Source: Cycas panzhihuaensis (taxonomy: Eukaryota; Plantae; Cycadophyta). From it: a stretch of 64,000 bases of DNA. The position numbers and the translations under genes were made by a program. Below the pieces are notes generated by a model. The model was not told the origin of the DNA. It saw only the letters and a list, made by a program, of their open reading frames with translations, and did not search any database. This document shows positions 9,411 to 64,000 of the stretch, piece after piece; the stretch's first letter is position 1; each line of letters opens with the position of its first letter. The stretch lies in assembly GCA_023213395.1 (NCBI GenBank), contig CM041465.1, positions 57,233,741 to 57,297,740 on the forward strand, given 5' to 3'.

Positions 9411-10040
9411 GGTCAGCTGCAGTTGCTTTATCATAAACCTAGATACAAGCTACAATTGCTCTATCATCAACAGAGGCAGCATATAAATTAGTAGTCAGTG
9501 TAGCCTGTGAACCAGTTTGGCTCAGACAATTGCTATCAGATTTGGACCAACAGCAGAAAGAGTTAACTACACTACTCTGTGATAATCAAAGCGTGTTCAA
9601 GCTGAAAAAGAATCTAGTTCTACATGCTTGAACAAAACATATTGAAGTTCATCATCACTTCATAAGAGAATAAGTTCAGAACAAAGAAGTTAACTTAATC
9701 TACTGTTCATTAAGTGAACAGATTGCAAACATTTTGACAAAGCCTCTCAGCAAAGACAAGTTCATAGCACTTAGAGATAAATTAGGATTGAAAGGATGAA
9801 ACATTAAGAGAGGGTGTTAGAATATAATGTTTCATCTAGAAGGGTGTTCTTGAGGGTCATGTAAAACCCCCCTTTTGTATTCTTAGACAAGTGTCTGACA
9901 TGTGTCACTCAGACACATGTCAGTTACAATGTACAATTGTATACATATGTAATTGATCTCTCATAATAAATCATTAGTCTTTCTGATAATAATCTAAGTT
10001 TCTACAGAGCCTTGGTAGAAGCTAGCAAGGAATCTCTTTA
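9411..10040 (+). mobile_element. Inverted 3' end of copia C1: RNase H, PPT, 3' LTR (9815-10006) and about 34 bp of host-element flank
   Basis: ATIALSSTEA.YK..CDNQS..TKHIEVHHHFIRE..LTKPL; aagagaggg|tgttag...tctaca; the LTR is the reverse complement of 16364-16563. Confidence 0.9.
9815..10006 (+). repeat. Copia C1 3' LTR (192 bp)
   Basis: TG..CA ends, PPT upstream, about 95% identical to the reverse complement of 16364-16563 apart from a TA-microsatellite indel. Confidence 0.92.
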
Positions 10041-16000: not shown

Positions 16001-16563
16001 AGAAATCTAGGATTTATCTCTTAAATCCATGCAAACATGAAATGAGGCAAAAGTCCCCCAAAACAGCTCCAAATGACTTTGCGCTTGAAGAAGAAGTTGA
16101 CGTCCGTATTGAGACGGTCCTAATGATCAAATTTCATCAAAAATTAAGCAGTTCAAAATTTCTGCGACAGTACAAGCTTGTACAGGTCCGTACAAGTATG
16201 TACTGCAATAAATTCTGCAGACAATTTCTTCTTCTGAAAAAGAAAACTTTGCCCCTTGTCCTCTTTAAGTTTTAAAGTGATCTAACTTCGTTCTGATCCT
16301 GAATCCTTATTGCAACTTCAAGTTCTTCTTTTCAAGGAGCCAGGTTGATCTGCTCTAATACCATGTAGAAACTCAGATTATTATCAGAAAGACTGATGAT
16401 TTATTATGAGAGATCAATTATATATATATATATATACACAATTGTACATTGTAATCGACATGTGTCTGAGTGACACGTGTCAGACGCTTGTCTAAGAATA
16501 CAAAAGGAGGGTTTTACATGACCCTCAAGAACACCCTTCAAGATGAAACATTATATTCTAACA
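10041..16563 (-). mobile_element. Copia C1 5' part: 5' LTR 16364-16563, Met PBS 16352-16363, gag, protease, start of integrase; interrupted by a LINE
   Basis: PBS tggtattagagc; WYIDFGASRHMTG; NLLSISQL; LELVYTNLCGP..YFLTFID ending near 10041. Confidence 0.88.
10480..14417 (-). mobile_element. 5'-truncated L1 LINE (endonuclease tail, RT, zf-RVT, RNase H) with poly(A) and 18-bp TSD
   Basis: [61 protein letters not shown]; TSD tctcaactttttctttct at 10462-10479 and 14418-14435. Confidence 0.95.
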
Positions 16564-29350: not shown

Positions 29351-31460
29351 TGTGAAAATGGCCAAATGGCCTTACAATCCCAAGATCTAGAAGCTATGTT
29401 CACTCTAGTTCTAGAAAGCAAATAAACTAGACTAAGAATGAAGCTATGAGACCAAACATGAGCAAGATCAAGCATGAAGAGAAAGAGCAAAATAATACCA
29501 AAGATGAGGAGTTGGAATTGGTCCAACCTCCAAATGAATAGTAGTTTGATTAACAAACTAGCAGCATAACAATGAAGCTCCAACTCTTTATGAGAGCAAT
29601 GAGGAGAGGTCTCAATACATAGAGTGAAAGGAGAGACCTAAGGTATTGGATGTTTGACAAGTGTTAAACATCCAATGTACATGCTTTGGATATAGGACAA
29701 GTGTCCTTTAGGGCTCTCAAGTGAGCAAAAGTGCATGGGGCTCCATTTGACCCTTTAATGACAATGCTGTGTCACTAGGAAAGAATGTGAGTGTGTGCTT
29801 TATCACTTAAGTGATAAGTCACTAAAGTACAAAAGAGTAAAAGTATAAAGGTACGATAGTACATGAATAATAAAGTACATAGGCTTAACATGTAAACATA
29901 AGGTTTAACACCCCCTTACTGTTTACAATGTTAAGTCGGACCCCTAAACCATCTCTAAATTTTACAAATTTTTCTCTACGAAGAGGCTTGGTAAAGATAT
30001 TTGCTGTCTACTCCTCTGTAGGCCTATACTGAAAGTTGATCTCACCACTTTGCACATGCTCTCTAATGAAGTGATGATGAACCTCAATATGTTTGGTCCT
30101 TGCATGAAATACAGGATTCTTGGCCAACTTAAGCACACTTTGATTGTCGCAATAAATCTTGGTGGGGTGATCGTGCTCAAGTCCAAGCTTTCCAAGAATC
30201 CGTTGTAGCCAGATAACTTCACAAGCTGTGCTGACTGCAGCTTTGTATTCTACTTCAGTGGAGGACAAGGCAACATTGGGTTGCTTCTTGCAACTCCATG
30301 AAACAACTGTTGAACCAAGGGTAAAGCAGTAACCCGAGGTTGACCTCTTGCTATCCTAGCAACCTGCCCAATCAGAATCTGAGAACCCTTCTAGAGTGAA
30401 GTTCTCATTATGTGCATACTCAAGGCCATGCTGCAATGTGCCTTTGATGTATTTGAGTATGTGTTTAGCTATATTCCAATGCTTTTGATTGGGTTGAGAC
30501 ATGTATCTAGAGCAAATCCCAACTGCAAATGAGATATCAGGATGAGTGTTGGTGAGATAATGAGACTCCCAATCAACTGCCAATAAAGAGTGGGATCTGC
30601 AGGTTCAACTTCCTCATTGAGAGCAAGCTTTGTGCTGTTCTCCATGGGTGTAGGCATTGGTTTGCAGTCGTGCATCCTGAACCACTGCAAAATGTCCCAA
30701 GAATATTTTGCTTGGGAGATGAAGATATAGCCTGGCTGTTGCTATACCTCAAGGCCTAAGAAATAATGGAGAAATCCAAGATCTGTCATTTCAAAACTCC
30801 TCTTCAAGTCATCCTGGAGAATCTGTATCATCTTAGTGTCATTGCCAGTGATCACTAAGTCATCTATGTACAAGACAATAAAAATGGCATGGTCTTTCCC
30901 AATTGTGATGTACAAGTTAAGATCGAAAGTAGATCGATGAAACCCATGTCTCAAGAAGTAATCATCAATCTTTGAGTACCATGCTCTTGAAGCTTGTTTC
31001 AGGCCATACAATGCCTTTTTTAGGTGACAAACTAAATGCTCCTTGCCTTGTACCTTGTAACTAGGAGGTTGCTGTTGACTTATAGATTCCACTCCCTTGT
31101 GGAATCAGTGCACTTGTCAAGGTTACACAGCGCTATAGTCTAGTTTTAGGACATCACAACATGGTTATACACATATATTCCACATATAATTCCATATATA
31201 ATTCACGAATGGTACACGCAAAGATGTAATTCAATACATACTTCAAGACATCATCAACACACATCAAGAATGCACCAATTTCCACATAACTCTTCTTTAT
31301 TAATTCAGCAGTTCATTTACATTGTGGGGAATGCGTTCTGAGCATTCCAAAGAAAGATACAGCCCGATCTCTGTTACATATGCGTGCCGGATGGTACTTA
31401 TCATGCACTCATGCTCCAATCGGCCATCATGCGATCATCTGCACCTTTGCGTACTCTTGA

Positions 31461-31640
31461 TCTCCGGCTCTCACCCTCCGAGAGTATGTCATGGAATTGA
31501 ATCACTCGGCTCTCACCCTTGAGAGTATACAATATGATTGAATCACTCGGCTCTCACCCTCGAGCACATGACATAGGAATGAATAACTCGGCTCTCACCC
31601 TTGAGAGTATACAATATGATTGAATCACTCGGCTCTCACA
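31461..31640. repeat. 5 x 41-bp tandem array with constant core (A)CTCGGCTCTCACCC in the G2 3' LTR
   Basis: Cores at about 31462, 31504, 31545, 31586, 31627; spacers after copies 2 and 4 are identical. Confidence 0.95.
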
Positions 31641-34600
31641 CTAGAATGGTCCTCAAAGCACCATTAAATATGTCCCTTTGATGCCTTTTGGGTGAAAGGT
31701 TATGACCCAAAGTCATAACCATACCTTTTTGTTACCAAGGTACCCTTTCACTTTAATCATTAGTTATACACTTAACTAATGTCTCTTTAGGTCCGTCACG
31801 TCCGGTAGCTTCCTGTGCCTCCACCGTCCTGCATCATACGTGCACTGCTTCCGCTCGGCTCGTTTCCGCTCTCGCACGTATCGTGATACGCACTGCCGTT
31901 CACGCACCGCCATAATGCACTGCACGCTGATTTCTTCATTGTTTCGCCTCGTATGCACTCCGTCTGATTCGTACTTGCATTCCTTTGGTCAATACAACTG
32001 TATTCCGCCTTCCTCAAGGCCTATGTGTCAAAATATGTCCCAACATCTATCCGGGTCAACATGATTGGGTTGAGCATCCTTGCTCAACAAAAATTCAAAA
32101 TTTGGGGTATTCCTCCCCTCTCTACATTCTAAGGTCGCTCTCCTGCGCCTCTGCTCCTTTCAGTCGCCATTCTGGTTAATAAATCCTCATCTATTGGTGC
32201 TTTGTTTTGTTTGACTCTCCCTTGATTTTCCGTATGATGATATATCTTTCCTCCATGCTTCACCATATTGCTTATGATATGAGTTACGGTTGTTTTCTGT
32301 TTTTAATTTTTGTATTTTATGTTACATACCGAATCGAATCACGTTAGGTATCAAGGCAATTCGATTTTGCCTCAACTTCATGCTGTCGATATGATACAAC
32401 CGGTGATCCTGGTAAGTTGCTCCACCCTAGTTGATATAGGGTTTCGGTTTACTACCCTTGACCATTTCGGTGCAATAAGCGGCACGAGTTTTTTCAACTC
32501 GATAGTGCCATTATGGTACACTTTCTCAATCCTGTATGGGCCTTTCCAATGCATCTTCCATTCTCCTTGGGTCGTTTGGGATTTGTTGTCGAATCGCCAT
32601 ACTCGATCACCCTTCTTGAAATATGATGTCTTGTCGTGGCGGTCGTGCCTTGTCCTTTTCCGCCTTTTCCTTGGTGTGGTATGCTTTGTCGATTTCTTCT
32701 TATGATCCCTTAATTGGTCTTCTCCTAACCAATGTTCTCTACAATGTCTCGAATGGGAAATTCCACATAGTGGTTCTCCATAAAAGGGCTTTACATAATT
32801 TCCAACATATTCTCCATGATTTCTATCTTCTGGAGTGGCAACTGTTTTGGTCACATTCCAAGAAAGTAGGTTACATCTATAGGATGAGGGGTTGACTTCA
32901 TAATTGTCCCGTAGCCAATAATCCACAAATCTCATCTCGTTTTCATCATCTGAAGAATTGTAAATTTCTCCAAAATAGGTCGGTTCTTCTTTACGGTAAC
33001 GAATTCGATGTTGTAGGCTTCTCCGCAGTATGATAGAGGTTTTCTTTGTCACATGAAGAAGTTGTTGCTTCCCTTACAACGGTTGTACTTGATCCATTGT
33101 CAGGTATCACTTCAATGGAATTCTTCCCCAACATTGGTAATACTACTTTATTTCCTTCATCGACAAGGTGAAGGTTACATCTTTCAACTCTGGAGACATT
33201 GGGTTTTGTATAGCCATGGTCTCCCCAATAAAGCTGGATAGGGTATTGCACCTTTCTCCGTTTCCACAATCGTAAAATCGATCTTTACGACAATTCCTGC
33301 CACATCCACCTTGATGTTGGTCAGTTTTCCCATGGGTCGTACTAGTAGTTCATTAGCCAACTTCAGCGAATAAGTCGCTGCTTCCAACCGTGCGCTTCCC
33401 AACTTCCGCCATGTCGAGGTGGGCGGTACATTCACAAATGCTCCCCATCAACGATCACTCTAAACTTTTCTCCCAAAACTGACATGGTTACCATCGGATC
33501 CATGTCGAATGATGGTATGATTTGCTTCCAACTCTTGGTAATTCCTTTTTGCAACACACCTCCTTTAATCCAGTCAATAACCTGGGACAGGGGGATAGTC
33601 AACTGTAACTGTTTCGCCAAATTCTCCATTAATAACAACATTCTGGGAATGTCTTCTTCTGGTAATCCTTTAAACAATTCTTCCATTTGCACCATTTGGG
33701 GTTTTACCGTTGATTCTTCTAGTAGTTTCTCTGGCTCTTTTTGTTTGTTTTTCCGAACGTAAACATTTTTTGTTTCCGGTTTACCCATTGGTAGTATATT
33801 TTCTTCCCGGACTAAACCATCCAACACTTGTTTTGCTTTTTTGTACCGATCCAATTCAGTTGGGGGGTGTGGATATTCTTCATCCACTTTCTCTTTCTGT
33901 TTATTCTGCAATTTCACATTTTTCGTTTCCGGCACGATCGTCATTAAGTTCGTTGCTTTGGCTTTACCCTTGCAATCTTCTGTTTTGTGGTCACTTGGGC
34001 CACGATTTACCACTATCTGACGGTTTTTGTTCGTATTCTAGCTTCATCGGGCATTCAGACTTCAAAGGTGCGAATCAGAGGCAAATGAGGCATCTTCCCA
34101 TTTGTTTCTTTCTTGAGGGCTCTGCACCCTCGTTGTATACACATTGCGAGGTGGGTTGCCTCTTCCCGACCTCGACCTCGAATGATTTTCCTTTGGAATT
34201 GTAGAAACAATCCCTAGTTGTGTGGGTATCTACCTCACATATGTGGCACCACTTCTCATTGGTGCCACATTGTTTTTAAGTTCAATTCACATTCCGGGTG
34301 GTATGTGAGTTTTCTTCACAAATATGGCACCACTTGGTCACCCTTCCAGCAGTGCTCTTTCTTCTTGGTGTCTCTTCTTCTTCCCGATTATTTCGATTTT
34401 CAATCGGGCTACTTCTTTCCTCGGTGCCTCTAATTGAGACTCCTCTTACGCTACTCCAACTTTGGCGGAAGGGTCGATTATCTTGATTCTCTCGACTCTC
34501 TAATCTCATCTTGCAATCTTAGCGACAAGGGATCTTGTCCCCTCCTCAAGGCGTCCATTTCCATCTCGAAATCCAATGCCAACTCCCGAGCATTCTTGAA

Positions 34601-35793: not shown

Positions 35794-35806
35794 GGCAGCG
35801 GAACCA
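35794..35806 (-). promoter_or_regulatory. G2 primer-binding site, tRNA-Glu type
   Basis: Plus strand GGCAGCGGAACCA next to the LTR, versus recalled plant tRNA-Glu 3' end GGCAACGGAACCA. Confidence 0.75.
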
Positions 35807-36186
35807 ATGTTGACTTATAGATTCCACTCCTTGTGGAATCGGTGCACTTGTCAAGGTTACAGTAGCTATAGTCTAGTTTTAGGACACATCAACATGGTTA
35901 TACACATATATTCCACATATAATTCCATATATAATTCACGAGAATGGTACCAGCGATGCAATTCAATACATACTTGACACATCATCAACACACATCAAGA
36001 ATGCACCAATTTCCACATAACTCTTCTTTTATTAATTCAGCAGTTCATTTACGAAGTGGAATGCGTTCTGAGCATTCCAAGAGCATCTGATCCTCATTAC
36101 ATATGCGTGCCAGATGGTACTTATCATGCACTCATGCTCCAATCGGGCATCATGCGTCATCATACGCACCTTTGCGTACTCTTGAT

Positions 36187-36362
36187 CTCGGCTCTCACCC
36201 TCAGAGTATGTCATGGAATTGAATCACTCGGCTCTCACCCTTGAGAGTATACAATATGATTGAATCACTCGGCTCTCACCCTCGAGCACATGACATAGGA
36301 ATGAATAACTCGGCTCTCACCCTTGAGAGTATACAATATGATTGAATCACTCGGCTCTCACA
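36187..36362. repeat. Same 5 x 41-bp array in the G2 5' LTR
   Basis: Near-identical to 31461-31640. Confidence 0.95.
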
Positions 36363-38294
36363 CTGGAATGGTCCTCAAAGCACCATTAAATATGTCCCTT
36401 TGATGCCTTTTGGGTGAAAGGTTATGACCCAAAGTCATAACCATACCTTTTTGTTACCAAGGTACCCTTTCACTTTAATCATTAGTTATACACTTAACTA
36501 ATGTCTCTTTAGGTCCGTCACGTCGTCGGTAGCTTCCTGGCCTCCACCGGTCCCGTCTTGTCATACGTGCTCGTTTCCGTTCGTTACATTCCGCTCTGAT
36601 ACGTACCGTGATACGCACCCGTTCACGCACTTTGTCATACGTACCCAGAATGTTGATTTCTTCACTGTTTCGCCTCGTGCGTACCTCCGTACGGTTCGTA
36701 CTTGCATTCCTTTGGTCAATACAACCTGTATTCCGTCTTCCTCAAGGCCTATGTGTCAAAATATGTCCCAACAGTTGCTCCAAGTATACCTCATCTTGAA
36801 GATCGCCATTGAGAAAGGTGCTCTTAACGTCCATTTGAAAAACCAGCCAATTGCATTGAGCTGCTAAGGCCAAGATGAGTCTGATGGTGTTCATGTTAGC
36901 CACCGGTGCAAAAGTCGCCTCATAATCTATGCCTTCTTTTTGTTTGAACCTTTTTGCAACAAGGCGGGCCTTCTGGTGCTTAAGTGTACCATTGGAATGG
37001 AATTTGGTCTTGTAGACCCATTTGCAGCTGATTGCCTGTTTATGTTTAGGCAATTCGACCAAATCCCAAGTTCCATTCTTTTCAATAGAATGGATTTCTT
37101 CATCCATGGCAGCCTTCCAATGTTCATCTTTAGAAGCCTCCTCAAAGGTGGAAGGCTCATCAACACATAGCACTTCAGCCATAAGTGCGAAATTGGTTTA
37201 CTGCCTATATCTTGATGGACATTTTCCTTCAATAATCTAGTCATCCTGCATTGTTTGAGTATACCATTTGGGTAACTTTTTGATTGATGTGACTTGAACC
37301 TCAAGATCTTCTGGTCTAAGTGGTTGATCAATAGAAGACGTGCTAGGATCAAGTGGAGCTGATGATGTGGATGGTCCAGCAAGTGCAGATGATGTACATG
37401 GAGTTGAAGATTGAGAGGGAAGGAAGGTCTCAACAATCTGTTTGCCTTTGTCAATGGGGGGTTGGATGGATGCTGTATCCAACTCCTGATCATCTTCTTC
37501 AGCAAAGATTACATCTCTTGAGAGATGCATTTTCTTTCCAATGGGATTGTACAACTTGTAGGCTTAGCTATCAATGGCATAACCTACAAAGATGCACTTT
37601 AGACTATGCTTGTCTAATTTAGTTCTTTGCTAATCGGGGATGTGCATATAAGCGGTGCACCCAAAAGTCCTCAAATGGCTGACAGTTGGCTTTTTGCTAG
37701 ACCATGCCTCCTCTAGTGTGATGTTGGTGACTGTTGTTGTTGGATTCCAATTTGCCACATAGGCAGCTGTGTGGAATGCCTCTGCCCAGTAAGCTCGAGT
37801 AAGTCCCTTGGCATGCATCATTGCTTTGGCCTTGTTAGCCAAAGTTCTATTCATTCTTTCAGAGACTCCATTTTGTTGAGAAGTGTGAGGAATAGTAAGT
37901 TGTCTCTGAATGCCATTGTCCTTGCAGAATTGGGTGAATTCGTCTGAAGTGAATTCGCCTCCATTGTCTGTCCTTAGTGTTTTGATGGATTGGCCAAACT
38001 CGTTCTCCACTTCAAGCTTGAATTCCTTAAACTTTTGAAATACTTCGGACTTACGTTTGAGGAAGTAAACCCAAACTTTATGGGAGAAATCATCGATGAA
38101 GGAGATGTAGTACAAAGCTCCTCCAAAGGAAGCGGTGGACATAGGTCCACACAAATCTGAGTGTACTAACTACAAAGGATATGATGCACTCCAAGCTTTG
38201 CCTTTAGGGAAAGGCAAGCGATGTTGTGTCCCCATTATGCATGCTTCACAAAGACATTTCATGCCATATATCTTGGGAAGCCCATGTCTAGGCC

Positions 38295-41200
38295 AAGTAG
38301 CAGGGCATGAGGTATATTTTTTTAGAAATGGCTTTAGTGGATATAATTAGGTCAGAATTGCCACACAGGACCAACTAAAAATGACCTTTGTTATAGAATG
38401 GGGAATGTATGCATACAAAGTGATGCCCTTTGGATTGACAAATACACAACCACTTTTCAAAGGACAATTTTGAATATTTTTTGACAAACAATTGGTAAGC
38501 CAATCAAGGTATTTTCGGATGATTGGACTGTATATACACTGTCAAATTTAAGGCTAATGCTTGAGACTGAAGAAGTAAATTATGTTTGAATCCAGCTAAA
38601 TGCACATTTTTGGTTCCATTCAGATCTTCACTTGGACATGTCATGACCAAAGAAGGACTGCAAACAGACCTAAACAAGGTAGCAATAATTTTGAATTTTC
38701 CTATATTGAAGTTAGTAAAGCAAGTAAAAGGCTTTTTGGGTATGATGGGATATTATAGAAAATTTATTAAGGAATATGATAGCAAATCCATTGGAAACCT
38801 TGCTTAAGAAAAAAACAACATGGAAATGGGAGTTGCGGCAGCAACTGGCTTTTGATCTACTAAAAAGAAAGATTGCAGAAGCTCTAATTCTGAGATTCCC
38901 AAATTGGGATCGACCTTTTCACGTGCATGTGGATGCTTCACTAATGGAAATTGGATGCATGTTGGCTCAACCTGGCGATGATAGCGTAGATCTTCCTATT
39001 TATTTTGCCAATCAAAAACTGACATCAGCAGAACAGAATTATTGAGTGACAGAACGTGAAGGTTTAGGCATGTTGTATGCCTTACAAAAATTCAGGCATT
39101 ACTCGTTAGTTAACCCCTTCACCTTCTTTGTAGATCATCAAGCTTTGAAATACTTAATAAATAAACCAATCTTGCAGGGAAGGATTAGTAGATGGTTGAT
39201 GCTATTCCAAGAATTTAACTTTAAGACCATTGTAAAAAAGGGAGAAAAGCATACAGTGCCTGATGTGCTGTCAAGAGAAGTTGAGGGAGAACTAGCCACA
39301 AGAATAGATGATGATTTTCCTGATACTAAATTATTTTCTGTGGAAGTAGTGCCAAAATGGTATGAAGGCATTGTAGAATATTTAGCTATGAGTCAGACAA
39401 CAAAAGGTTTGGAGTGAGTGGAATGACAAAGTTTTATTCGAAAAACATTCGCTTTCTAATTAATTCGCGACATGTTGTACAAATGAGGTCCAGAAGGGGT
39501 ACTACGAAGATGTGTTCTGGAACACAAAGTACAGGCAATTTTGCATGAAGCCCACAAGGGAGTGGCATCCAAGCATCAAGGCATTGAAGCTACAGTATGA
39601 AAGATTTTATTGGCAGGCCTGTGGTGGCCAACAGTATTCGAAGATACTGATAGATGGGTTTGAAGTTGCGATGTCTGCCAACCTGTGGGCAAGCCTGGAA
39701 AAACCCATTTCGTGCCTCTACATCTAATTCTAGCACAAGCACCATTTGAGAAGTGGGGATTGGACTTATTGGACCAATTAGCCCTCCACTGAAGCGAACA
39801 AATGCAAGGTATATAATAGTGGCTACTGATTTTTTCACACAATGGACAAAAGTTTGACCTCTCAAGAATTGTGATGCTAGAAGCACTGCAAAATTTTTAT
39901 ATGAAAATGTTATAGTTTGTTTTGGTTGTCCTTTAGAATTAGTATCGAATCAAGGAACTAGTTTTTTAAACAATACTATAAAACATTTGACTAGCGAGTT
40001 TATGATCCAACACTATCAATCTTCTTTGTATTATCCTAGAGATAATCGTCAGGTTGAAAATACTAACAAAATTTTGAAGTTTAGCCTTAGCGAAGATTTG
40101 TAGTGAGGGAAGAATAGATTGGGCAAAATGATTGCATTCTGCCCTTTGGGCGGATAGAACAACAACCAAACTGCCACATAAGTAGACACCATTCCTATTG
40201 GTATATGGCTTAGATGTCATATTTTTGTTGGAATTTCAGGCGGAAAGTTTTTAGGTGGCAGTTCGAATGTGCATGGACGAACAAAACTCTTGGAATGAGA
40301 GGATCATGGAACTATTAAAGTTGGATGAAAAAAGAGCCTGAGCATTATGGGAATTGAAAATGAAAGAAAAGGCGAAGAAAGATGTGGCATGATCGACATC
40401 TGCGAGTACGAGAGTTCCATGAAAATGATCTTGTTTTAATGTACAATAGTAAGTTTTGAATGAAACCAAGTAAGATGAAATTACGTTGGTTAGGACCGTA
40501 TAAAGTATTACACATTGGAAGAAATGGGGTAGTTCAACTTGGACAGCTCGACGGGAAAATCCTTCCCAAGGTAATCAATGGGAGTAGATTAAAGCCTTAT
40601 ACAGCAAGATTAAAAAAAAAAAAAATTGATGCAAAACACAAGGTAGTAAATGTTGATGTCATCAAAAGGAGGACCCACAAAGTGCAATTAAGGAAAGAAT
40701 AAGATTGCGATTGGTGCCAAATCTAGGAGTGATGGTTGCAAGTAAAGAAGATGTGACCATTATGATGGGAGAAATTGATCGCAATCCAAGTAGTTAGCGT
40801 TTCCATGATTGCGATAAGACAAGGATGGGGTGAGCACATTAATATGGTAGTTATGAACAACTCTTTTAAATAATTAAGCTTGGAGACAATTGAATTGCAC
40901 AAATAAAGCAGGCTTGGTAACAAGTCTTGAGTGGGTAGTGCAGAAAGAAGGAGCACAACCATGGCGACAACTGAATTGCAACGGGTGACAGTAACTTTCA
41001 GAGAATCTAACGATGACCAAATATGGAAGCAGTGGCAGGAAATGAAGGCTGAAGAAGAATGCAAAAGATATTGGTTGGCATCCTTCCAAACGTGTACAGT
41101 TTTCTTTCAACAGCAATTGCAATGGTGGTGCAGCGACTGTCTCTATTAGACTTTTCTGCTGAAGTAGTTGCAAGGATAACGGGGTTACTAAATGAAGGGC

Positions 41201-43126
41201 CGAACATTCCCAAGGATAAATAGATACCCAGGGAACAGGCAATGCACAAAATAAGAGCAAATGAATTTGATGTTTCTAGTTTAGGAATTTGAATTTCTAG
41301 GATTTCATCTAAGGAAATGCAGTGGATAGCACATTTCCTATTTACTAGAGCAATATTAGGACAAAAGAATTCATTTGTCCCTAGTCATTTGCGTACTATG
41401 TTAATAAAGGTTATGGAGGGTCATAAATTTAATTGGGCTAGGTTTGTCTCTAGTAAATTTTTGAGGAATTTAGAAGTCGTAAAAGGTGCTACTTAGTCTG
41501 TTCTATTTTTCTACCCTACTTTGTTGCAAGGGTTATTATTTTTGCAATGCCCAAGTATCCAACTTCTTGAGGTTGAGGAAGGACAACCTCTATTGGCAAA
41601 ATGGACAGAATTATTTTCAAGGTAGCGTGGATGGGGTTCTTTGCCTTTGACAAAGTTAAAAGAACATGTTAGTAATTGGCTCCACCTACAGTGGCACGCT
41701 AGCACTCCCTAGTCGTGCTCAGTGAAGAAGGAAGAACTGCGAGCAGGGGCAACCTCGCAGACCCAAACAAGGGTGTAGAATCAAAAGAATAAAGAGAAAG
41801 AGAGTAAGAAAGCAGAGATAAGAGAGGGGAAGCAAAAGGTGGAGGAAGAACCTACCACGGGTAAGGATGGAGTGGATCAGCCAGAGAAAAAGTCAAGGAT
41901 AGTTGAACCATTAAAATGCGAAGAAGAAGAGAAATAGAGGAGGAAATTAGCAACAAAAAAAAGACGGCAAGAAATTTTAGAAATCTTGAATAATAAAACA
42001 CCAAAAGTAAAATTTAATCAATTAGAGGACTATTTGGAAGAAGGCATAGACCCAATGAGCTATGACCTGCAAGACATCCTGCAATGGAAGACTTCCTTTT
42101 TGGCAAAGGTAACTAGACCACTTGTCACTAAGTTGGAACAAAGGAACATAAGACCTTTGCTAGATATGCAAAGAATTCAAAAGCTTAAAGAAAAGTTGGC
42201 AACTATAGAAGCCTGCCTGGAATTTCTGAAAAAATTTATTATGACCTGGGTAAAGAATACCAATGCCATTACTCCTAAGGTACAAGCTTTTAGAGGTTGC
42301 TTCCACTAGGAGATTCCCCTGGGCCTAGATGACATAATTTATAAGTTGAGAGCTTGGATCCTTCAAATGTAAGAGGACACAGCACATGCAAATAAATTTT
42401 GGACTAAAATGCATAATTTGTGTCGATCATAGTTGGGGTCATGATTATGAGTGGATCGTGGTTGAGGTTATAGGTATGAGCCGATTGTCGTTGGGGTCGA
42501 GAGTACAAGACAATCATAGTTGGTGTTGTGAGTACAAGCAGATCGCAATTGGGGTCGTGCCTACGAGCCGATCGTAGTTGGGGTTGCAAGTACAAGTGGA
42601 TCGTAGTTGGGTTCCTGAATACGAGCCGATCATAGTTCGGGTTGCAATTACGAGCCAATTGCAGTTGGGGTTGCGGTTGCGAGCAGATTGCACTTGGGAC
42701 CATGGTTGCAAGCTGATTGCAATTGGATGATTATACCCGATAATAGTTGCAATTAGATTGTAAAGAGAAAAGTGATTATCAAGGAAGGCTAGCCGTTGTA
42801 ATTGTTTTGTGAAGTAATTAACGGTAGTTGAAACAATTGATCTTTTTTGTATAAGTAGTAGTTGGTTCAAGGAATTAAGTATGTATGTGTGTGTGTATGG
42901 GCAAGAAAGCCTAAAAAGGGATTGTAAGGAATTTGTTCTCTTGCTGTGGTAGACTTGACATGCTAGTCCGATTCTTGTAGACTGTTGGGTCTGCGTCTGG
43001 TTGTGAAAGGACCAGACACAGTTCCCTATTATAATAATATTATGTTTTGCATCATATTGTGTATCCTTTGTGCTTACTTTATTCATTATGTTGGTAGTTT
43101 CATATGAGTAAGGTTCAAGGCACACA
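38295..43126 (+). mobile_element. G3: gypsy 3' part (partial RT, RNase H, INT, extra ORF3 about 40961-42415, LTR remnant about 42420-43126)
   Basis: VAGHEVY..GFSGYN; FHVHVDAS; EREGLGMLYALQKFRHY; WLGPYKV; LTR end gagtaaggttcaaggcacaca resembles the G5 LTR end. Confidence 0.85.
42425..42745. repeat. About 11 x 29-bp degenerate tandem array (gatcgtagttggggttgc..tacgagcc) in the G3 LTR region
   Basis: Regular 29-bp periodicity read directly. Confidence 0.85.
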
Positions 43127-46100
43127 ATCACCTAATTCAAGAAATGTGATCCCTAGTTGCTTACAATTTCTAATGGGCAGCCATATCTTGTGATAATCAC
43201 TTCATATAGAATACTATCGACATTCGCATTCCTTACTGGCCTTGTTTCTACCCACTTGGTTATATAATCTGTGGCTGCTAAGATATATCATGATTGGGAT
43301 AGTCAAGTTGCTGGTTTGATAGGTCCAACGAAATCAAGACCCCATTTTTCGAATGGTGCCAAAGATAGGATTGGATTTAGAGGTTGAAAATCTTGACAAC
43401 TTGGCTTTCCGATTCTTTAGTAGTAGCAGCATTTTTTAATCCAGTTGTTGATATCCTTGAACATGGTAGGCCACCAAAATCTTGTCATTAACACTTTTCT
43501 CCATGTTGCCTCCTTACCCATATGTTCCTTGACCACACCTTGATGGTCTTGGACTATTATTTGTTCAATCTCGTGAGGCTTTACATAATGATGTAACACA
43601 TCATCTAATCTCAAGAAATATAACTCGTCGTGAATAAGTTGATATGGTTCCACCTTCTGAACCAAGTGTCTTCTCTTTGTTTTATCCAACTCTGGTGGTA
43701 GCTCTTCTTTCTCTAGATGCTCTAGAATTCCTTTATACCATTTGATCAGAACTGATTCTACACTGTAAAACATTGCATCTAAGAAGTCATCAGGTATTCC
43801 CATGGATTTTCCTCCATTTTCAATCCTAGATAATTGATTAGGAATGACATGAGCCTTTCTAGGTTTGACCATGATCTTAAATGTAAATTCTTGAAACAAC
43901 ATTAGCCACCTACTAGTTCTTCCTCTTAACATTGGCTTATTCATGAGATACATAAGTGCTTAGTGGTCCACATAAAAGATAAACAGATTTAACAATAGAT
44001 AGTGTTGAAATTTTTGCAAAGCATACACAATCTCTAGGCCTTCTCTCTCGGTCGTTGCATAATTTTGTTATGCCTTTGTCAGTTTTCGAGTGGCAAAATA
44101 TATGGGATGATCAATATTTAATTCCCCTAGTTGTGGGAATATGCACCCAATGGCATATTGTGAAGCATCTACATGCACATGGAAGATTTTATTCTAGTTA
44201 AGAAATCAAAGAATGGGCGTCGATGCAATCACTCTTTTTATGGACTCGAATGCTTCTTGTTGCTCTTCTCTGCACTCCCATTCGATATCCTTCTCGATAG
44301 ATCCTCCAAAGGTCCTAATATACATGCATATCCCCTTATAAACATTCTATAATATCCAATTAGTTCCAAAAATCCTTTTAGTGGCTTTCATGTCACTAAT
44401 ACTAGAAAATGTAGAATAGATAACACTTTTGTTGGATCTGTCAATAAATCATTTTTGCTTACGATGTGAACCAATAAATTTGGAAATGGAATCGAGAATA
44501 TACACTTCTATGGATTCAAGAAAAGATTGTTTTCTCTACACGTTTGCAACATTTTCTTCATATTTTCCATACGATTCTTCATTATGCCATAAAGAGTCTA
44601 GTTGTCTAGGATTATAGCCACCTTGTCATATATCTTTTTGAAGATATTGATCAAAATGCACTGAAATATGGTTGGTGCATTGGTTAGCCCAAAGGGCATG
44701 ACCCTGTAGGCATATGTTCCCCATTCTATCATAAAAATGGTTTTGGCTTGATCCTTAAGAGCAATCTGCACTTGATTGTACACAATAAGCCCATCTATGA
44801 ATGAATAAGCTTCTTTACCCCCAACCATCTCCAATACATCTTTCGTAAAGGAAATTGGAAACAAGTCCTTTATGCTTACCTTATTCAACTACCAATAATA
44901 TACACATACTCTAATTTTCCATTTTTTTTTAGCACCACTACCATTGGGCTTACTTGATCACTATAGTTGATCTCATGGATATACCCTACTTCTAACATCT
45001 TATCCAACTCTGCTTTAACCTTCTCCTTATGCTTAATATTCATGTGGTAGGGCTTCTATTTCATTGGCTTGGCCACTTCGATTAGATCATATGGTGCATC
45101 CCAGTCTTTGGAGGGATGCCCTTGAGGTCCTTATAGGACCACGCAAACACATCATTGAACTCTTTAAACAATGCCTGTGCTTCCAACAATTGTTTTCTCA
45201 TATCAATGATGTTTCTATGGTGGTATTTCTTGTATTTCTAATTCCTTCTCCTTTGGTTTGTTTTATCTCATGCACATATTTCATCACGGTTTCGCCCATA
45301 GGTTAATTTTTTTCCTCTTCTTTCTTTACTACTTCTTCGAAGACTTTCCTACCTACCTCGAAGTGGTCTATTTACACTTGAGGGTTGGGGTAATTGTTTG
45401 CTACGTTCTCTTTTCTTTTTCTTTACTCCTTGTTATAGTTTCACATTCTTGCTGGATTTGAAGACTATAGTCATTAGATTCGTCACTTTAACTTTCCCCT
45501 TGGAGTCCTTCATGTGTTTATTCCCTAGTTCACAATCTTTGCATATGGAAGGACATTGCTTGTGTGCCTTAGCCCTTAGGCAGTTTGATTTCTAATGCTC
45601 AAATTCAATGCACACTAGGCACCTGCCAATAGTTGCCTTCTTCTTAGATGTTTCTGGTACATTTTTGGCAACGTATAGGTGTCTAGATGAATCAACACCT
45701 TTACTTGTGCCTCTTCCTCTACAGTTTCTCCCCCAATAATTAAAGTAGCAATCTTTTGTGTTGTGGTCGCCCACATCGCATATGTGGCACCATGTATCTT
45801 GCTTCCTCATAGCATTATTTTTAGGGTTAAGTTCACATTCTTTCATGGAATGAGAATCCTCTACCCAAATATAACACCATTTATCAATTTGCAATTCTTT
45901 CCCTTTCTTCTTCTTTCCTTTCACTTCCTCCTCTTCCTTCCTATTGGCTTTTATTTTCAATCTCGCCACTTCTTTCCTGAGGGCTTCTACTTCAAATTCT
46001 TTTTTTGCCTTCTCCACTAGGAAGTACTATCAACAATTTTACTGCCATTTTATCTCCCAAAGCTCATCTTGTAGTTTTAATAATAAGAGATCGTGCCCTC

Positions 46101-46460
46101 TCATTTGGATGTCCCATTCCTTCTCAATCTAAGGCCCGTTCTTCAGCATTTGAAAGGATTTCAATGGATGCATTTGCATTGCTAACCTCAATTTCTTGTT
46201 TAATCTTTTAACAAAATAATTCTTCATATTACGATTTATCACTTTTCATCTATCATATTAGCCGTTATTATTTTCGTGTGACTTATATAAGTCAACACTG
46301 ACTCTCTAGGTCTTTATCTAATTTCTTTTAATGCAATCTTGACAACTTCATTGCTGCAAAACTTCTGAAATCTTTCCTCAAATTCTCTGTTCACTTCCTC
46401 CTAAGATTTTGTTTTCCTCAACTCCTTGTACCATGTTAGTGGTGCTCCCCATAGTGTGTT
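43127..46460 (-). mobile_element. G4: degenerate gypsy gag, RT, RNase H, INT; protease apparently deleted; integrase cut at 43126 by G3
   Basis: WCHICDVGDHNTKDC; GTYAYRVMPFGLTNAP; SRWLMLFQEF; WWPTMFKD. Confidence 0.8.
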
Positions 46461-50561: not shown

Positions 50562-51427
50562 CACTGTAACCTTCCACCAGAGCTAACTTTTTCCAGGACC
50601 TTTTCGAGCATGAAATTGCAATATTCAAAGTCTTCATGCTTTAGCTTTAGCCTATAATTATAGCTTGCATAAACTGTATTATTTCTTGGGAACTTATTTT
50701 ACTTCCAACGAATCCTCCTTTTCTGCAATAATAACTTGAACTAATTGACCATTTCCATGTTTTGCGAACTAAATTGAACAAAAGGTATCAATTTGGTGGC
50801 GTATCTTTTCCATCATGCCGAAAATGTACCTCATTAGTGCTAATGTTTTTCTAGTTAGGATGTATAAAGAAATAAGGTGACACGAGAGAGGCATATGATA
50901 TATGAGTGTGTGATCCCAACCCTCAACCAAAGGAGCTAGCTCGTGGCATGATTCTTTAATCTAAGAAGGGGAATTTGGAAAATTTTATATGGCTGGCATG
51001 AGTACAACAAACAAGTTATCAACGGTGCATAGGGACAAGTGCTAGCACCCAGTGTGGCACTTCAAAATTTGGGTTTGTCAGGTTAGGGTGTGTGCGTCCT
51101 ACTCCCTTACCCTAACATTCTCGAATACATTCTACAAGAGTTACAAGCAAGAGAGAAAGACACAATGTTGGAGCACAAATAACCAAGCTTTCATTATCAA
51201 ACGGGCCCTACGTCTAGTCCTCTCACAGCCAGATGTAGGCCTGAACAGTGTACAATGGCTACAATGGACGACATTTCGCAGGAATACACAGAAATACAAA
51301 TCAGTTTTTTTTCCCTTTCTTACAATAACTTTATTTATATTTCCTATCCTACAGTTATAACTACTTGATGTAACTATTCCATCGCTCTTTAACATCATTT
51401 TACACTTTATTCATAACTAATGTTGCC

Positions 51428-51731: not shown

Positions 51732-52422
51732 TTTTACCTGAAAATAACAGCTACCCTTTTGGCTGTACACATCTCTCCTGTGGCTACTTTAAATGAGTAA
51801 CATACTCGTTTAAAATTCCAAATTTTTTTCTCCTCCTTCTTTCCTCCCACTGAAATTTTCACTTTCCCTTATTTTTCAACTGGGCCTCCCTAATCTTTGC
51901 TCTTTCTCTGCATATATATTCCATGTCAGGCCTGGCAATCTGCGGGGGCAATCTTAAACCATTCTGTTTCAAGTACTCACATAATAATGCTAAATTTCGC
52001 ATTGTTTCTAACTGTGGAAGTGTAGGCAATTCTCTTGAATGCAGTTGTTCTATTTCTTAGGTCAACTCAGCATTCAATCTCTGAGCAAATTCCAATTCTG
52101 ACTGGTATGAATTCATTTCTTGCCATAACTTCATGCAGCACTCTAATTCTTCGTATGACTTAAGGATCCATGCTCCCAGCCGATGATATACAGGTTGCAT
52201 ATCTTCTGGAATGTATTGATTGAACTGTTCTGTAAATTGTTGCAGCTGAGGGATGACCTCGTCAACGTCATCTACCCATTCCAACACAAATTTCTTTAAA
52301 GATTCTAACTTTTCTTCGGTCACCTACTGAATTATTTTTAATGATTCTTTGGCTAGTTTGGCTCTACTTTCCAACTCCATAACTAGTTGTCTAGTTACTT
52401 AAGCTAGAAAGGATGTTCTCCA

Positions 52423-55400
52423 TGTTGAAAATCAAACCTGCAATAAGATAATTCACAAACAGAAACAAACACCTCCATAGGATCAAACGGTACCCTTAAG
52501 ATACCTCCATTGTATTAACAAAACATCCTTACAACAGATATTACATATGATACACTATGTTGTGTATTTATAATAAATGTCATGATGGTGAGGGTGGGAC
52601 CCGCTTGCATGTGGGACAAAACAAATGTGCGTTAATATTCCAACACTCCCCCTTAATGCACATTTGGGTCATTTGTATTTGCAATGCTTTGTCCTTGAAA
52701 TTGTCATGAAGATGATGTCTTCAACTTGATCCTTGCCTTCAATCTTGTAGAGATGTCTTTGTTGTCGAATGGTGCCTGCATCTTGATTTTCGTCTTCAAT
52801 TTTGTACTGATGCCTTTGTAAGATGTTGTTCTCAGCTTGATTTCCGTCTTCCATCCTGTAGTGATGACGTTGATGTAGCAGCTCTAGCAAGTGCAAATTT
52901 TGATTCTCCATTATGGCTGGTCTAGTTTGATTTTGATGTAGATTATGTAAGTAACCACCTTCAAATATAACTTGCTTTTCATCATTATTTTGAATAAGTT
53001 CTTGATCACTATGTACAACAGTGTTTTCTTCAACCCTTGGAATGAGATCTTGATCAACTTGCATGCTCTTTGAACTTGAATCAATGCTCGAAGAAGGAAC
53101 ATCATTCAAACTTGAATCAATCCGAGACTCATCTTCTATAAGACCATCAAATTCATATTCAATTTATCTTGAAATCATGGTGTCATCTATATAAACCTTT
53201 ATCGATTCATCACTTTCAACGTCTTCATTAGTAGTTGTAGTCTCATGAATGCATTCAGTAATATGTTCAGTAGTAGTTTCATCAATAGTCAAGCATTCTT
53301 CATCTTGACATACTGTTTCATCAATGTTGATAATATTTTCTTCATTCTTTGTACTTATACCATAACCATCATTGACCTTAATCGCCTTTTCAATCATTCG
53401 TTGTATCTCTTCAAGAGTTTGTTCAAATACTTCTCTTAAAAATTTCCACGCTTCCTTAGCAATACTTGCATGTTGAATCTTAGAAATGACAAAATGGTAT
53501 GCGGAAGGAAGATCAACCTTGTTCAATGCAGCAAGAATCATGATGAATGCCTTTCTGTCTTTCTTCTCAAGTATTTCCTTTTCTTCTTCATCCATAGGGA
53601 TATCATATCCATCAGTGACAAGCTTCCACAAACCTCTAACTATGAAAAAACTTCTCATTTTAATCGTCCAAAAAAAGTAGTCTTCTCCATTACACTTAGG
53701 TATCAGAAGAAATGAATCCCTTAAGTTATATTCATTTGTTTCACGAACATACACAACCACATCATTCTCCTCCATAATTGTAAGTGTACTTCCAAACAAT
53801 GTCCCTTTTCCAATCAACAGACTCACCCATTAATCAATCTCAACAAACTTTCTCATGTCTAATGTCCTCACATCACTGACTTCATCGTCATATCATCACC
53901 TTGTCCATTTCTCACATAGAATCTAAAACACTCACTTCACCAAATTAATGCCGCATAAATCTCACAATGATAAGACACACACACTTCACTCAGTTATCCA
54001 AATATGACTCATGCCACAAATATTACCATTAATGAATAAACCACACTCATATGCAACTCAATAAAGTTTGCTTCCTTGTAACTTAGGTCATCCTTCTTTA
54101 CCCATTTAGTCAATTAATAAAGCGCACCATCGAACATGCATTCTTACTGCCCTTCTCTTGCCCATGTCATGCTCTCAAATTCCTCATATATTGCCTCATA
54201 TCACCATCTTCTTGTCCTCAAATTTGCCTTATCATGCCCATAAAGCTCCTTCAAGTAAATCACATTCCAAGAAGCACTAAGTTGCCATATGCCATCCAAC
54301 TCATTCATGCAAACACATGTATAATCGCCTCATCATCACAATAACTCTCTGATACAAACTCATACAAGAGAACCAACAGATGCCTCACATTGCCTTATGT
54401 TGCCAATATCATATTGCCATCCATGCCTCATGTATTATTACCATCAACAAAGACCTTATAAAATATTTTTATGCCACTTTAAGAAATATATATATTCATC
54501 AAAATGCCAAAATAAAATTACCAAAAGTGGCATCAAATGACAACAATGTGTATAAATAAAAAGGGCACAAATATATCAAAGTAACTCCCCAAATATATCA
54601 AAAGACCTTGATAACATTATTAAATCAAATTGATTTTGAAGTATATCAAAATCAACAAAAATAAAAATGCAACAATAACGAATTATCAATAGAGTCACAA
54701 ATCCAAATATCAAATCAACTTCATAAAATATAAAAAAGGGCGAATTGATATAATACAGCGCGACAATCTATATCAAAGGCGTAAATCACACGGCGATCTG
54801 AATTATTGAACATCAAAATATATTAACATATTAATATATTTAAACGATAAACTTGGCCGCCGGTGACATTGCAGTTGCGTGAATATATCAAACACGTAGG
54901 GCAACTCAACGCAGAGATATAAAAACAGCGGCGACTCTCAAAATTAATACGCCAATGTAACTGCGAATGGTTGAATGATTGATCTTCACTCATCAAGGAC
55001 GCACACAGACAATGATATGTATCACGCGGGGCATTTATCAAATGTGGATAGATAGAGAAAATTCATGAGTGGATGTCAGACATATTAACTGGCCGATTAA
55101 ATTAATCATTACACAGGCGACAACAAAATAAAGTACAAAACAACGAGCAGGATATTCACAATGTAATTTTGATAAATATGACTATATACAGGCGCTTGCA
55201 AATATCATGCGGACTGATATGCAATATGCGACAAAATATATCATATTGACGTAGAGGATATATAGAGGGTGATCCAATATTAACACCCAAGAAATGTAGG
55301 GTAAAATTACAGCTACGTAGGGAAATTAGCAGCCGAGCCAGAGAATATTCAACACACAGAGATTAAATCATGTGGTTCCAATAAGTATCATATATCAACA

Positions 55401-56160
55401 GGGCTACAAATCTATTAGCAAGCAGTCAGAGACATCAAGCTACAATGCAATACAGGCGACTAAGTCTTATGAGGCAACTGTATGATACATGCAAACTATG
55501 CAAGCCAAAATATATTAGTAGAGGGTGGCAAATAATATATATTGATGACGGCTGAATTATTATTCAAACCTTGAAATGTCAAAAAGGGTGACCAATATAT
55601 TTCAAAGTATGGGCATACCTTATTAATTTCACGGCTCTGCAATGGCCTCACAAGGGTTTTGCACTCTTCCACAGCTCAACCAAGGGCTGACAGCATAATA
55701 AATAGGTGTACTACTTCTCTTCATACGTGGGCAGCCTCAAACATCTCAACGGATAACAAAATCACCTCCACACAATCACATGGCTTCTATAGGCTCAACA
55801 ACGGTTACAAGAAGAATGGACATTATTGAACAAAACAAGCACTTCCTCACACACCAGAATTAGGGTTTCATCAACCAACACCTTGCTCAACCTGGCTTCA
55901 CCTCGCTCAAGCTCGCTTCACCTTAACTCTGATACCATGTTGGAAATCAAACTTGCAATAAAATAATTCACAAATAGAAATAAACACCTTCACAGGATCG
56001 AACGGTACCCTTAAGATACCTCCATTATATTAACAAAACATCCTTACAATAAATATTACATATGATACACTATGTTGTGTATTTATAATAAATGTCATAA
56101 TGGTGAGAGTGGGACCCACTTGCATGTGGGACAAAACAAATGTGCATTAATATTCCAACA
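52423..56160 (-). mobile_element. Non-autonomous copia-derived element (TR-GAG-like): 223-bp LTRs, Met PBS, PPT, gag-only ORF, TSD CTCCA
   Basis: LTRs 52423-52645 and 55938-56160; actctgatacca at 55926-55937; ctccccctta at 52646; ctcca on both sides. Confidence 0.95.
52669..53826 (-). pseudogene. Copia gag N-terminus fused to an acidic, repeat-rich tail; one in-frame stop at 53164-53166
   Basis: NGEDYFFWTIKMRSFF..GLW..AKEAWKFL; ORFs 53164-53826 and 52669-53109 are in the same frame. Confidence 0.75.
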
Positions 56161-57333
56161 CTCCATCCAGACACGTTTTGCGGGTCGTATTTCATAGAAT
56201 CCAATCCTTCTTCAAGTATCTCCTTGTCTACGGTATATTCCACCTCCAGCTGCTGGTTTTCTATTTTCTCTATAACCTCTTGTTTTCTTTTCTCCTAGGC
56301 CAGTCTTATCCTTTTTTGTCTTTGGAACTCACTCTCTATATACTCCTGTTGTTTACTACTTTCTTCTTCCTGTTTCCTTTTTCCCTCTCTTTTTTTGCCT
56401 CCCCTCAGAGAGGTTTTTCCTTCTTGCCATCTATCTCTCCTTGAGAGACCTCCGCCTGAGAATTTTCTCCTCTGTTTTCATCCTCTTCCTTAATTTCAAT
56501 CACTGTCTTTTCTAGCGTCCTCAGCTGATATCGCTTTTGTACCCTGTTTTGAACCACACGTTGGATTTCTGTCCATTTTTCTTCACTGATACAACCATGG
56601 TCCAACAGGCTAGGGGCGCCTGTTCTTCTTCTGGTTCAGGCATTACTATTTCTGGGCATTGTGCAATTAATAATCCTTGCAGAATTATCACATGATAAAA
56701 AGTAACGGACTTTACCGTCTTTTGCACCATTTGCAAATTCTGCAGCAATCACCTTGCTACAAGGCTCTCCCAGTTATAGCGCTTCCCTTGGGCTACCTGA
56801 TTGACCATAGTTCTTAAATTTGCAGGTACAAACAAATTCTTCTGGGTTAGTATAACCTTGATGAAAATAAAATGTGCCAGGAATCCTTTTTCCACGGACT
56901 GGATCCCTGCAATTCGAATCCCTGAATTGGAGGCATCCTTCTTGCTTGCTCCAAATTGCTTTGCCGCTTCTTCCCTAGTTATTTGGTTGTCTCTTTTCAC
57001 AAGTTCTCCGTCCTTGGGGAGACCGGTGAGCACTGCTATTGAATCTTTTGAGATTCGTAGTATATCTAGTTGTGTTGCTATCAATGGAGTTGCTGTACTC
57101 ATAAATTTCACCAATCATGGGAAAGTCCCGATCAATACATACCTGTGAAGTCCCGCTTCTATCATGAATTTCTTCCTCATGTCTTCATCTCCCATGACCT
57201 GCCATTCTGCGCGAATCTGAGGGTCATCGTTTTCTCTGAACAGAATTATCTTCATCATCGTTTCCCTTGTGCGTCGATTTGCCTGTTGCACACAGTCCTG
57301 CAGTGCTCTGTTTGAAATGCCGTGTCTCAACAC
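56161..57333 (-). pseudogene. G5 extra ORF3, N-terminal part (PMD-like); continues at 52422 to about 51900 after the insertion
   Basis: IAVLTGLPKDGELV..YNWESLVA; homologous to G3 ORF3. Confidence 0.7.
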
Positions 57334-63720: not shown

Positions 63721-63736
63721 CCCGGCAACGAAACCA
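63721..63736 (-). promoter_or_regulatory. G5 primer-binding site, tRNA-Glu type
   Basis: Plus strand CCCGGCAACGAAACCA versus recalled tRNA-Glu 3' end CCCGGCAACGGAACCA (one G-U wobble). Confidence 0.85.
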
Positions 63737-64000
63737 ATGTGCGCCCTACTCCCTTACCCTAACATTCTTGAATACATTCTACAAGAGTTACAAGCAAGAG
63801 AGAGACACAATGTTGGAGCACAAATAACCAAGCTTTCATTATCAAAAGGGCCCTACATCTGGTCCTCTCACAACCAGACGCAAGCCTGAACAGTGTACAA
63901 TGGCCGTAGTGGACAACACTCTGTAGGAATACACAGAAATACAAATCAGTGTTTTTTTCCTTTCTTACAATAACTTTATTTATATTTCCTATCCTACAGT

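Follow-up and report, generated by a model that had tools for sequence, protein, structure and literature searches.

[quoted passage not shown] We tentatively regard this hairpin as a conserved LTR RNA stem-loop of a small clade of tRNA-Glu-primed Ty3/gypsy elements that most likely provides a second contact with the primer tRNA, a reading to which we give slightly less than an even chance. The two complementarities, the predicted structure with its exposed loop and the conservation of the hairpin between elements are the observations from which this reading starts.

G5 has the features by which Ty3/gypsy elements are recognized, namely an LTR pair, a PBS after the 5' LTR and the domain order reverse transcriptase (RT), RNase H and integrase. 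The 5' LTR (63738-63998, minus strand) is 261 nt in length, has TG...CA ends and is 91.7% identical to its partner, the 3' LTR (51091-51355, minus strand), and the RT (RVT_1, 60437-59658), the RNase H (RT_RNaseH, 59639-58938) and the integrase core (rve, a weak match, 58559-58326) are all encoded on the minus strand. In a search of representative proteins, the best single-domain identity of the G5 RT to its relatives was 49-58% among proteins of at least 800 amino acids. A small LTR element is nested inside G5 at 52420-56164; its LTRs (52420-52649 and 55935-56164) are 93% identical, and it contains a tRNA-Met-type PBS (55937-55926) and a copia-type gag fragment (53826-53164).

The PBS of G5, TGGTTTCGTTGCCGGG (63721-63736, minus strand), begins one base (T, 63737) after the end of the LTR and is unique in the window. 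ARAGORN detected no tRNA genes in the window, and the tRNA reference was a 56-nt fragment of A. thaliana tRNA-Glu/CTC given in Table 1 of PMC3221849, which is from Arabidopsis and not from Cycas. The anticodon arm of the Arabidopsis tRNA-Glu(CUC) is CUCGG-CUCUCAC-CCGAG and its 3' end is CCCGGCAACGGAACCA (PMC3221849). The preliminary description had the PBS complement the 3' 16 nt of tRNA-Glu; the complementarity is real but not perfect, since it consists of 15 Watson-Crick pairs out of 16 and one G.U pair, which reflects a C-to-T change; the calculated energy of the duplex is -30 kcal/mol. Judged against this reference, the PBS matches the 3' end of tRNA-Glu specifically, a tRNA that is not one of the main primers given for non-chromovirus gypsy elements of plants (PMC6317226). 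The hexamer GTATCC at 63721-63716 overlaps and directly follows the end of the G5 PBS, and GTATCCT is found at 43061-43067 in the LTR of a related element, G3. The complementarity of these two motifs to the GGAUAC of tRNA-Glu, at the junction of the D arm and the anticodon stem, was set aside as being at the chance level for 6-7-mers.

The G5 stem-loop (63852-63884, minus strand) is formed by 13 bp between 63884-63872 and 63864-63852, four of which are G.U pairs, and presents the 7-nt loop GTGAGAG at 63871-63865. Its minimum free energy (MFE) is -19.8 kcal/mol (z -6.0), and none of 200 shuffled sequences folded equally well. Hairpin, loop and PBS were thus found on the minus strand where the preliminary description had placed them; the stem, however, is of 13 bp and not of 8 bp as given there, and the separation of about 120 nt between the hairpin and the PBS was measured as 128 nt from the loop and 115 nt from the base of the hairpin. 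The loop had been called the exact complement of the tRNA-Glu(CUC) anticodon loop, and this holds: the loop sequence CUCUCAC is confirmed from PMC3221849, all seven of its bases are complemented by GTGAGAG and the resulting duplex has an energy of -9.2 kcal/mol. The same loop would pair with the UUC anticodon loop at -6.6 kcal/mol, with a G.U pair tolerated. In ensembles of the whole LTR the predicted probability of the loop being unpaired is 0.62-1.0, and in these models the anti-anticodon loop is exposed in the G5 LTR RNA. The loop-closing pair is U.G in all three copies of the hairpin known from the window, with the 7-nt loop being formed only on the element sense strand, and the antisense strand of the G5 5' copy folds poorly (-6.2 kcal/mol). 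In the predicted fold of 63900-63715 (z -2.1) the hairpin comes first and is followed, after about 15 nt, by a long stem that closes U5 onto the 3' half of the PBS, so that the 115 nt separating the hairpin from the PBS are drawn into a single domain.

A decayed copy of the hairpin, reported earlier near 51212-51234, is indeed present in the 3' LTR of G5 (51207-51239, core 51234-51212, minus strand); its loop is kept intact at 51226-51220, and its stem contains two A.C mismatches, with an energy of -14.8 kcal/mol. The differences between the 5' and 3' copies are all transitions, as expected for neutral decay after insertion.

The third copy belongs to G3, the pol region of which (38295-40625) aligns to 60097-57758 of G5 with 66% DNA identity and the 3' LTR of which lies at 42880-43127 on the plus strand; its 5' half and PBS were not found within the window. 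The G3 hairpin (42991-43021, core 42995-43017, plus strand) is identical to that of G5 over the upper 8 bp and presents the loop GTGAAAG at 43003-43009, which differs from the G5 loop by a single base. This loop is the complement of the UUC anticodon loop and is calculated to pair at -6.5 kcal/mol with UUC and at -3.1 kcal/mol with CUC. The changed base is the one opposite wobble position 34, and only one of the 21 possible single substitutions turns complementarity to CUC into complementarity to UUC. By its sequence, the G3 variant fits the UUC isoacceptor, in an LTR whose element has no PBS in the window. At 42880-43130 the G3 3' LTR adjoins, without a spacer, the minus-strand gypsy integrase of a further element, G4 (Integrase_H2C2, 43953-43417); G3 probably inserted into G4, or G4 was truncated at the junction. 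Neither an LTR nor a PBS can be recognised any longer in G4, which occupies about 43417-46300 on the minus strand.

The LTRs of G5 and G3 are nearly unalignable outside a single block, which corresponds to 63845-63905 of G5 (minus strand), comprises the hairpin and about 20 nt of its 5' flank, and is the only segment returned by BLAST of the two LTRs (E 5.7e-8). Within this block 45 of 61 positions are identical (74%), compared with 85 of 200 (42%) in the remaining LTR (Fisher p 1.4e-5) and with 66% in the DNA of pol, with a peak of 26 of 30 over the hairpin. Selection on the hairpin is supported by this comparison, because no other block is conserved between the G5 and G3 LTRs. The stem shows no clean two-sided compensatory change between the G5 and G3 lineages; in its lower part the changes are one-sided (G.U to G-C), together with two disruptions. 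A scan of the window with a covariance model of the hairpin recovered three copies only, two of which are from one element (G5). A further hit of 9.5 bits at 24526-24495 was rejected as copia RT coding sequence.

As to chance, on the two strands together the window has 99 sites at which a stem of at least 8 bp bears a 7-nt loop, among which 0.012 would be expected to carry either of the two tRNA-Glu anti-anticodon heptamers and two intact ones were observed. Beyond the five LTRs of the lineage formed by G5, G3 and a third element, G2, both heptamers occur in the window at background frequency and never in a hairpin, and two tRNA-Met-primed LTRs in the window contain no anti-anticodon motif. 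One of the repeats in the window is an inverted pair of 200 nt at 9815-10006 and 16364-16563 (91% identical), the right arm of which (16364-16563) is the 5' LTR of a tRNA-Met-primed element with its PBS at 16363-16352; another, at 20479-20668, consists of two head-to-tail copies of a 95-nt unit that are 94% identical. The searches outside the window gave no relatives of the motif: the hairpin pattern had no match in genome contigs, the LTR-end plus PBS pattern had seven bacterial chance matches in genome contigs, and the hairpin pattern with an N loop had 16 bacterial chance matches in metagenome contigs. In viral contigs the hairpin and anticodon-arm patterns and the RT protein had no match, and the PBS pattern had 104 matches, of which the low-GC and motif-bearing ones that were inspected are phage coding sequence.

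The conservation reaches 20 nt past the hairpin, a hint, at the level of sequence, of other functions. The hairpin might be read as a conserved LTR element with another job, with the match to the anticodon being coincidental or vestigial; candidates are an R-region structure that controls polyadenylation or assists strand transfer, a signal for packaging or dimerisation, a pseudoknot formed with the CUCUCUCU tract downstream and a palindromic protein-binding site in the DNA. Besides the non-hairpin flank, this reading can draw on the AATGAA or AATAAT that comes after the hairpin in the G5 and G3 lineages, on the CTCTCTCTT tract (63796-63804, minus strand) 60 nt downstream, which is complementary to part of the loop, and on the antisense strand of the G3 hairpin, which folds as well as the sense strand (-17.3 versus -16.0 kcal/mol). 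The CTCTCTCTT tract is a possible intramolecular partner of the GAGAG of the loop, although the MFE fold pairs it elsewhere, within the U5 stem. Another job would, however, leave unexplained why the loop matches the very tRNA specified by the PBS (expected 0.012 per window), why the sole change in the G3 loop falls on the partner of the wobble base and why G2 carries five longer complements, and we consider it doubtful, while still a serious alternative to a second primer contact.

A candidate TATA box, TATAAATAAA, lies at 63975-63984 (LTR positions 15-24, minus strand), overlaps AATAAA and is situated 105 nt upstream of the G5 hairpin; if this putative box is the promoter, then the G5 hairpin would be transcribed. 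A partly conserved A-rich box is found at the matching place in the G3 LTR. Twelve nucleotides after the hairpin, AATGAA (63835-63840, minus strand) is a candidate near-upstream element of a plant poly(A) signal, and it is aligned with AATAAT in the G3 LTR. Taken together, the positions of the box and of AATGAA would fit a short U3, with the G5 hairpin in R or U5. Counting against a leader-transcribed hairpin, the best TATA-like run of G3 is downstream of its hairpin. A hairpin upstream of the transcription start site would not on its own refute a contact with the tRNA, because the second part of the Ty3 PBS is located in U3 at the 3' end of the RNA (PMC5371799). By analogy, a hairpin in U3 or R could possibly have a Ty3-like role in 5'-3' bridging.

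The association of a tRNA-Glu PBS with an anti-anticodon sequence is found again in G2, whose LTRs lie at 31073-32045 and 35808-36773 on the minus strand. Its PBS, TGGTTCCGCTGCC (35794-35806, minus strand), is of the tRNA-Glu type, with the same ACA-T-TGG junction as in G5. The 5' LTR contains an array of five units (36192-36361, minus strand) with exact complements of 13-15 nt to the anticodon arm of tRNA-Glu(CUC), and the 3' LTR contains a corresponding array of five units (31468-31639, minus strand) with exact complements of 12-15 nt; the units are of about 41 nt and in tandem, and the complement of the anticodon arm reads ACUCGGCUCUCACCC. The suggestion that the G2 array is an amplified version of the G5 motif is borne out, with five exact complements of 12-15 nt in each LTR, which are also longer. 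The array folds no better than shuffled sequences (z +0.8). The internal region of G2 is 47% identical to G5 at the amino-acid level in one segment, and since the internal sequence amounts to only 3.8 kb, G2 is probably non-autonomous. The presence of five complements in each LTR together with a tRNA-Glu PBS argues that the link between this type of PBS and an anti-anticodon sequence is not due to chance. A tRNA-Glu PBS and an LTR anti-anticodon sequence thus recur in the lineage in two forms, always on the element sense strand; G2, G3 and G5 are related, and the association may trace to a single event. The sequence TTGTACACTGTT (63900-63889) on the 5' side of the hairpin in G5 and G3 resembles the spacer TTGTATACTCTC of G2 units 2 and 4 (36330-36319); this likeness of about 13 of 17 bases, which by itself is at chance level, hints, as a sequence comparison, at a common origin of both modules.

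The orientation and length of these complements could also be explained if the motif were a relic of a captured primer. Plus-strand synthesis would have run past the first 18 nt of the tRNA, and the resulting anti-tRNA copy would have recombined into the LTR, where it would be functionless and, in G2, tandemly duplicated. In all three elements it is the sense strand that is complementary to the tRNA, as read-through copying gives, and G2 retains up to 15 nt of contiguous tRNA complement. Yet read-through products put tRNA sequence after the PBS and not inside the LTR, and G5 and G3 share only the 7-nt loop with the tRNA, the stem being their own; that this hairpin is nevertheless the best-conserved part of the LTR argues for selection, and such an origin is improbable. 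The 15-nt sites of G2 are also long enough for pairing with small RNAs, and reviews describe the targeting of LTR elements at their PBS by tRNA fragments, so that the motif may be imagined as serving tRNA-Glu-derived small RNAs (halves or internal fragments) as a target or decoy in host silencing or its evasion. Here the 7 nt of G5 and G3 do not reach the length needed for Argonaute targeting, the motif covers the anticodon loop, which is the place where tRNA halves are cleaved, and an element would not conserve or amplify a harmful target; we regard this as less probable again than a primer relic.

A second contact with the primer would operate as follows. Transcribed in the leader, the hairpin would bind the tRNA and affect priming: its exposed 7-nt loop would form a kissing contact with the tRNA-Glu anticodon loop, the 3' 16 nt of that tRNA molecule would anneal to the PBS 128 nt downstream of the loop, and the intervening U5 would fold into a long stem that brings the loop and the PBS close to each other. 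Through such a contact the element would more readily select the correct tRNA, down to the CUC or UUC isoacceptor, and place it for the start of reverse transcription; should the hairpin also be present at the 3' end of the RNA, the contact could instead aid strand transfer. A kissing loop combined with an acceptor-end contact on one tRNA, as put forward in the preliminary description, stands at the level of complementarity, where tRNA-Glu matches both the PBS and the loop predicted to be exposed. Natural anticodon contacts that are known use 3-5 nt; pairing of all seven loop bases is sterically demanding, which counts against a second contact of this kind.

The pair of contacts, one with the anticodon and one with the acceptor end of the same tRNA, had led to the geometry being called T-box-like and to the idea of a device that senses uncharged tRNA-Glu. 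A T-box likewise reads one tRNA at two points, but it is a bacterial switch of transcription or translation that uses Stem I, a platform and an antiterminator. G5 is without these: it has neither a Stem I platform nor an antiterminator-type discriminator, no Rfam family, the T-box included, reaches its gathering score anywhere in the window, and the acceptor-end contact is an ordinary 16-nt PBS. The comparison with the T-box, a family that is bacterial, therefore fails on architecture, and a T-box-like sensor is very improbable, the least credited of the readings considered here. In any retroelement the tRNA primer must be deacylated for it to be extended. Because only deacylated tRNA can prime, the notion of sensing adds nothing, and no such device is implied by the contacts.

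The closest precedent for an anticodon contact is that of HIV-1, in which an A-rich loop pairs with the anticodon of tRNA-Lys3 and must change together with the PBS for the stable use of another tRNA (PMC2691828, PMC1785369, PMC7793103). In HIV-1 about four A residues face a U-rich anticodon at 10-20 nt from the PBS, whereas in G5 seven of seven bases are matched, on a 13-bp hairpin, at a distance of 128 nt. HIV-1 is, moreover, a lentivirus primed by tRNA-Lys3, whereas G5 is a plant Ty3/gypsy element of the tRNA-Glu type, and its anticodon contact is a predicted one. The bipartite PBS of yeast Ty3 and the extended PBS of Ty1 resemble the proposal for G5 in that the tRNA pairs at sites beyond the PBS for its 3' end; their contacts, however, involve the T and D arms of tRNA-iMet and are not displayed on a hairpin loop, whereas in G5 it is the anticodon loop that would be addressed, and on a hairpin. 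Complementarity to the anticodon stem-loop is also a feature of elements with half-tRNA priming, such as copia, Ty5, the plant elements Osser and Bianca and the fungal Helenus (PMC6317226, PMC10886601). In these elements the complement itself serves as PBS immediately behind the 5' LTR and a cleaved tRNA is used, whereas G5 has a normal 3'-end PBS next to the LTR and its anticodon complement within the LTR. A half-tRNA PBS was consequently rejected for G5, the LTR-adjacent site being of the 3'-end type and the anticodon complement lying 128 nt upstream. LTRs of the Helenus/Cassandra type share with G5 the presence of tRNA-related sequence inside the LTR (PMC10886601), but they hold whole tRNA-like units in sense orientation, with Pol III A and B boxes, which are not complementary to the primer of the element itself. 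A tRNA-derived LTR of the Helenus type was likewise rejected, since only 7 nt (G5 and G3) or 15 nt (G2) are involved, these are antisense to the tRNA and ARAGORN finds no tRNA. A literature search found no description of an anti-anticodon motif in a plant gypsy LTR.

In conclusion, we consider it possible, with a confidence that falls somewhat short of even, that these elements represent a plant Ty3/gypsy lineage with natural two-site primer capture, in which an ordinary PBS is combined with anti-anticodon modules in the LTR that recognise tRNA-Glu by its anticodon loop, either as a single kissing hairpin tuned to CUC or UUC (G5 and G3) or as a longer, five-fold array (G2); the system would then be the plant counterpart, evolved independently, of the A-loop contact of lentiviruses. 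The choice of tRNA by retroelements is understood in detail only in a few retroviruses and in the yeast Ty elements; to our knowledge, only the PBS has been catalogued for the elements of plants, which make up most of many plant genomes. If the proposal is true, an anticodon-reading hairpin would be a second and easily scored determinant of primer specificity, it would explain how the lineage stays on an unusual tRNA-Glu primer, and it would allow the A-loop principle to be tested in a natural system other than the lentiviruses.
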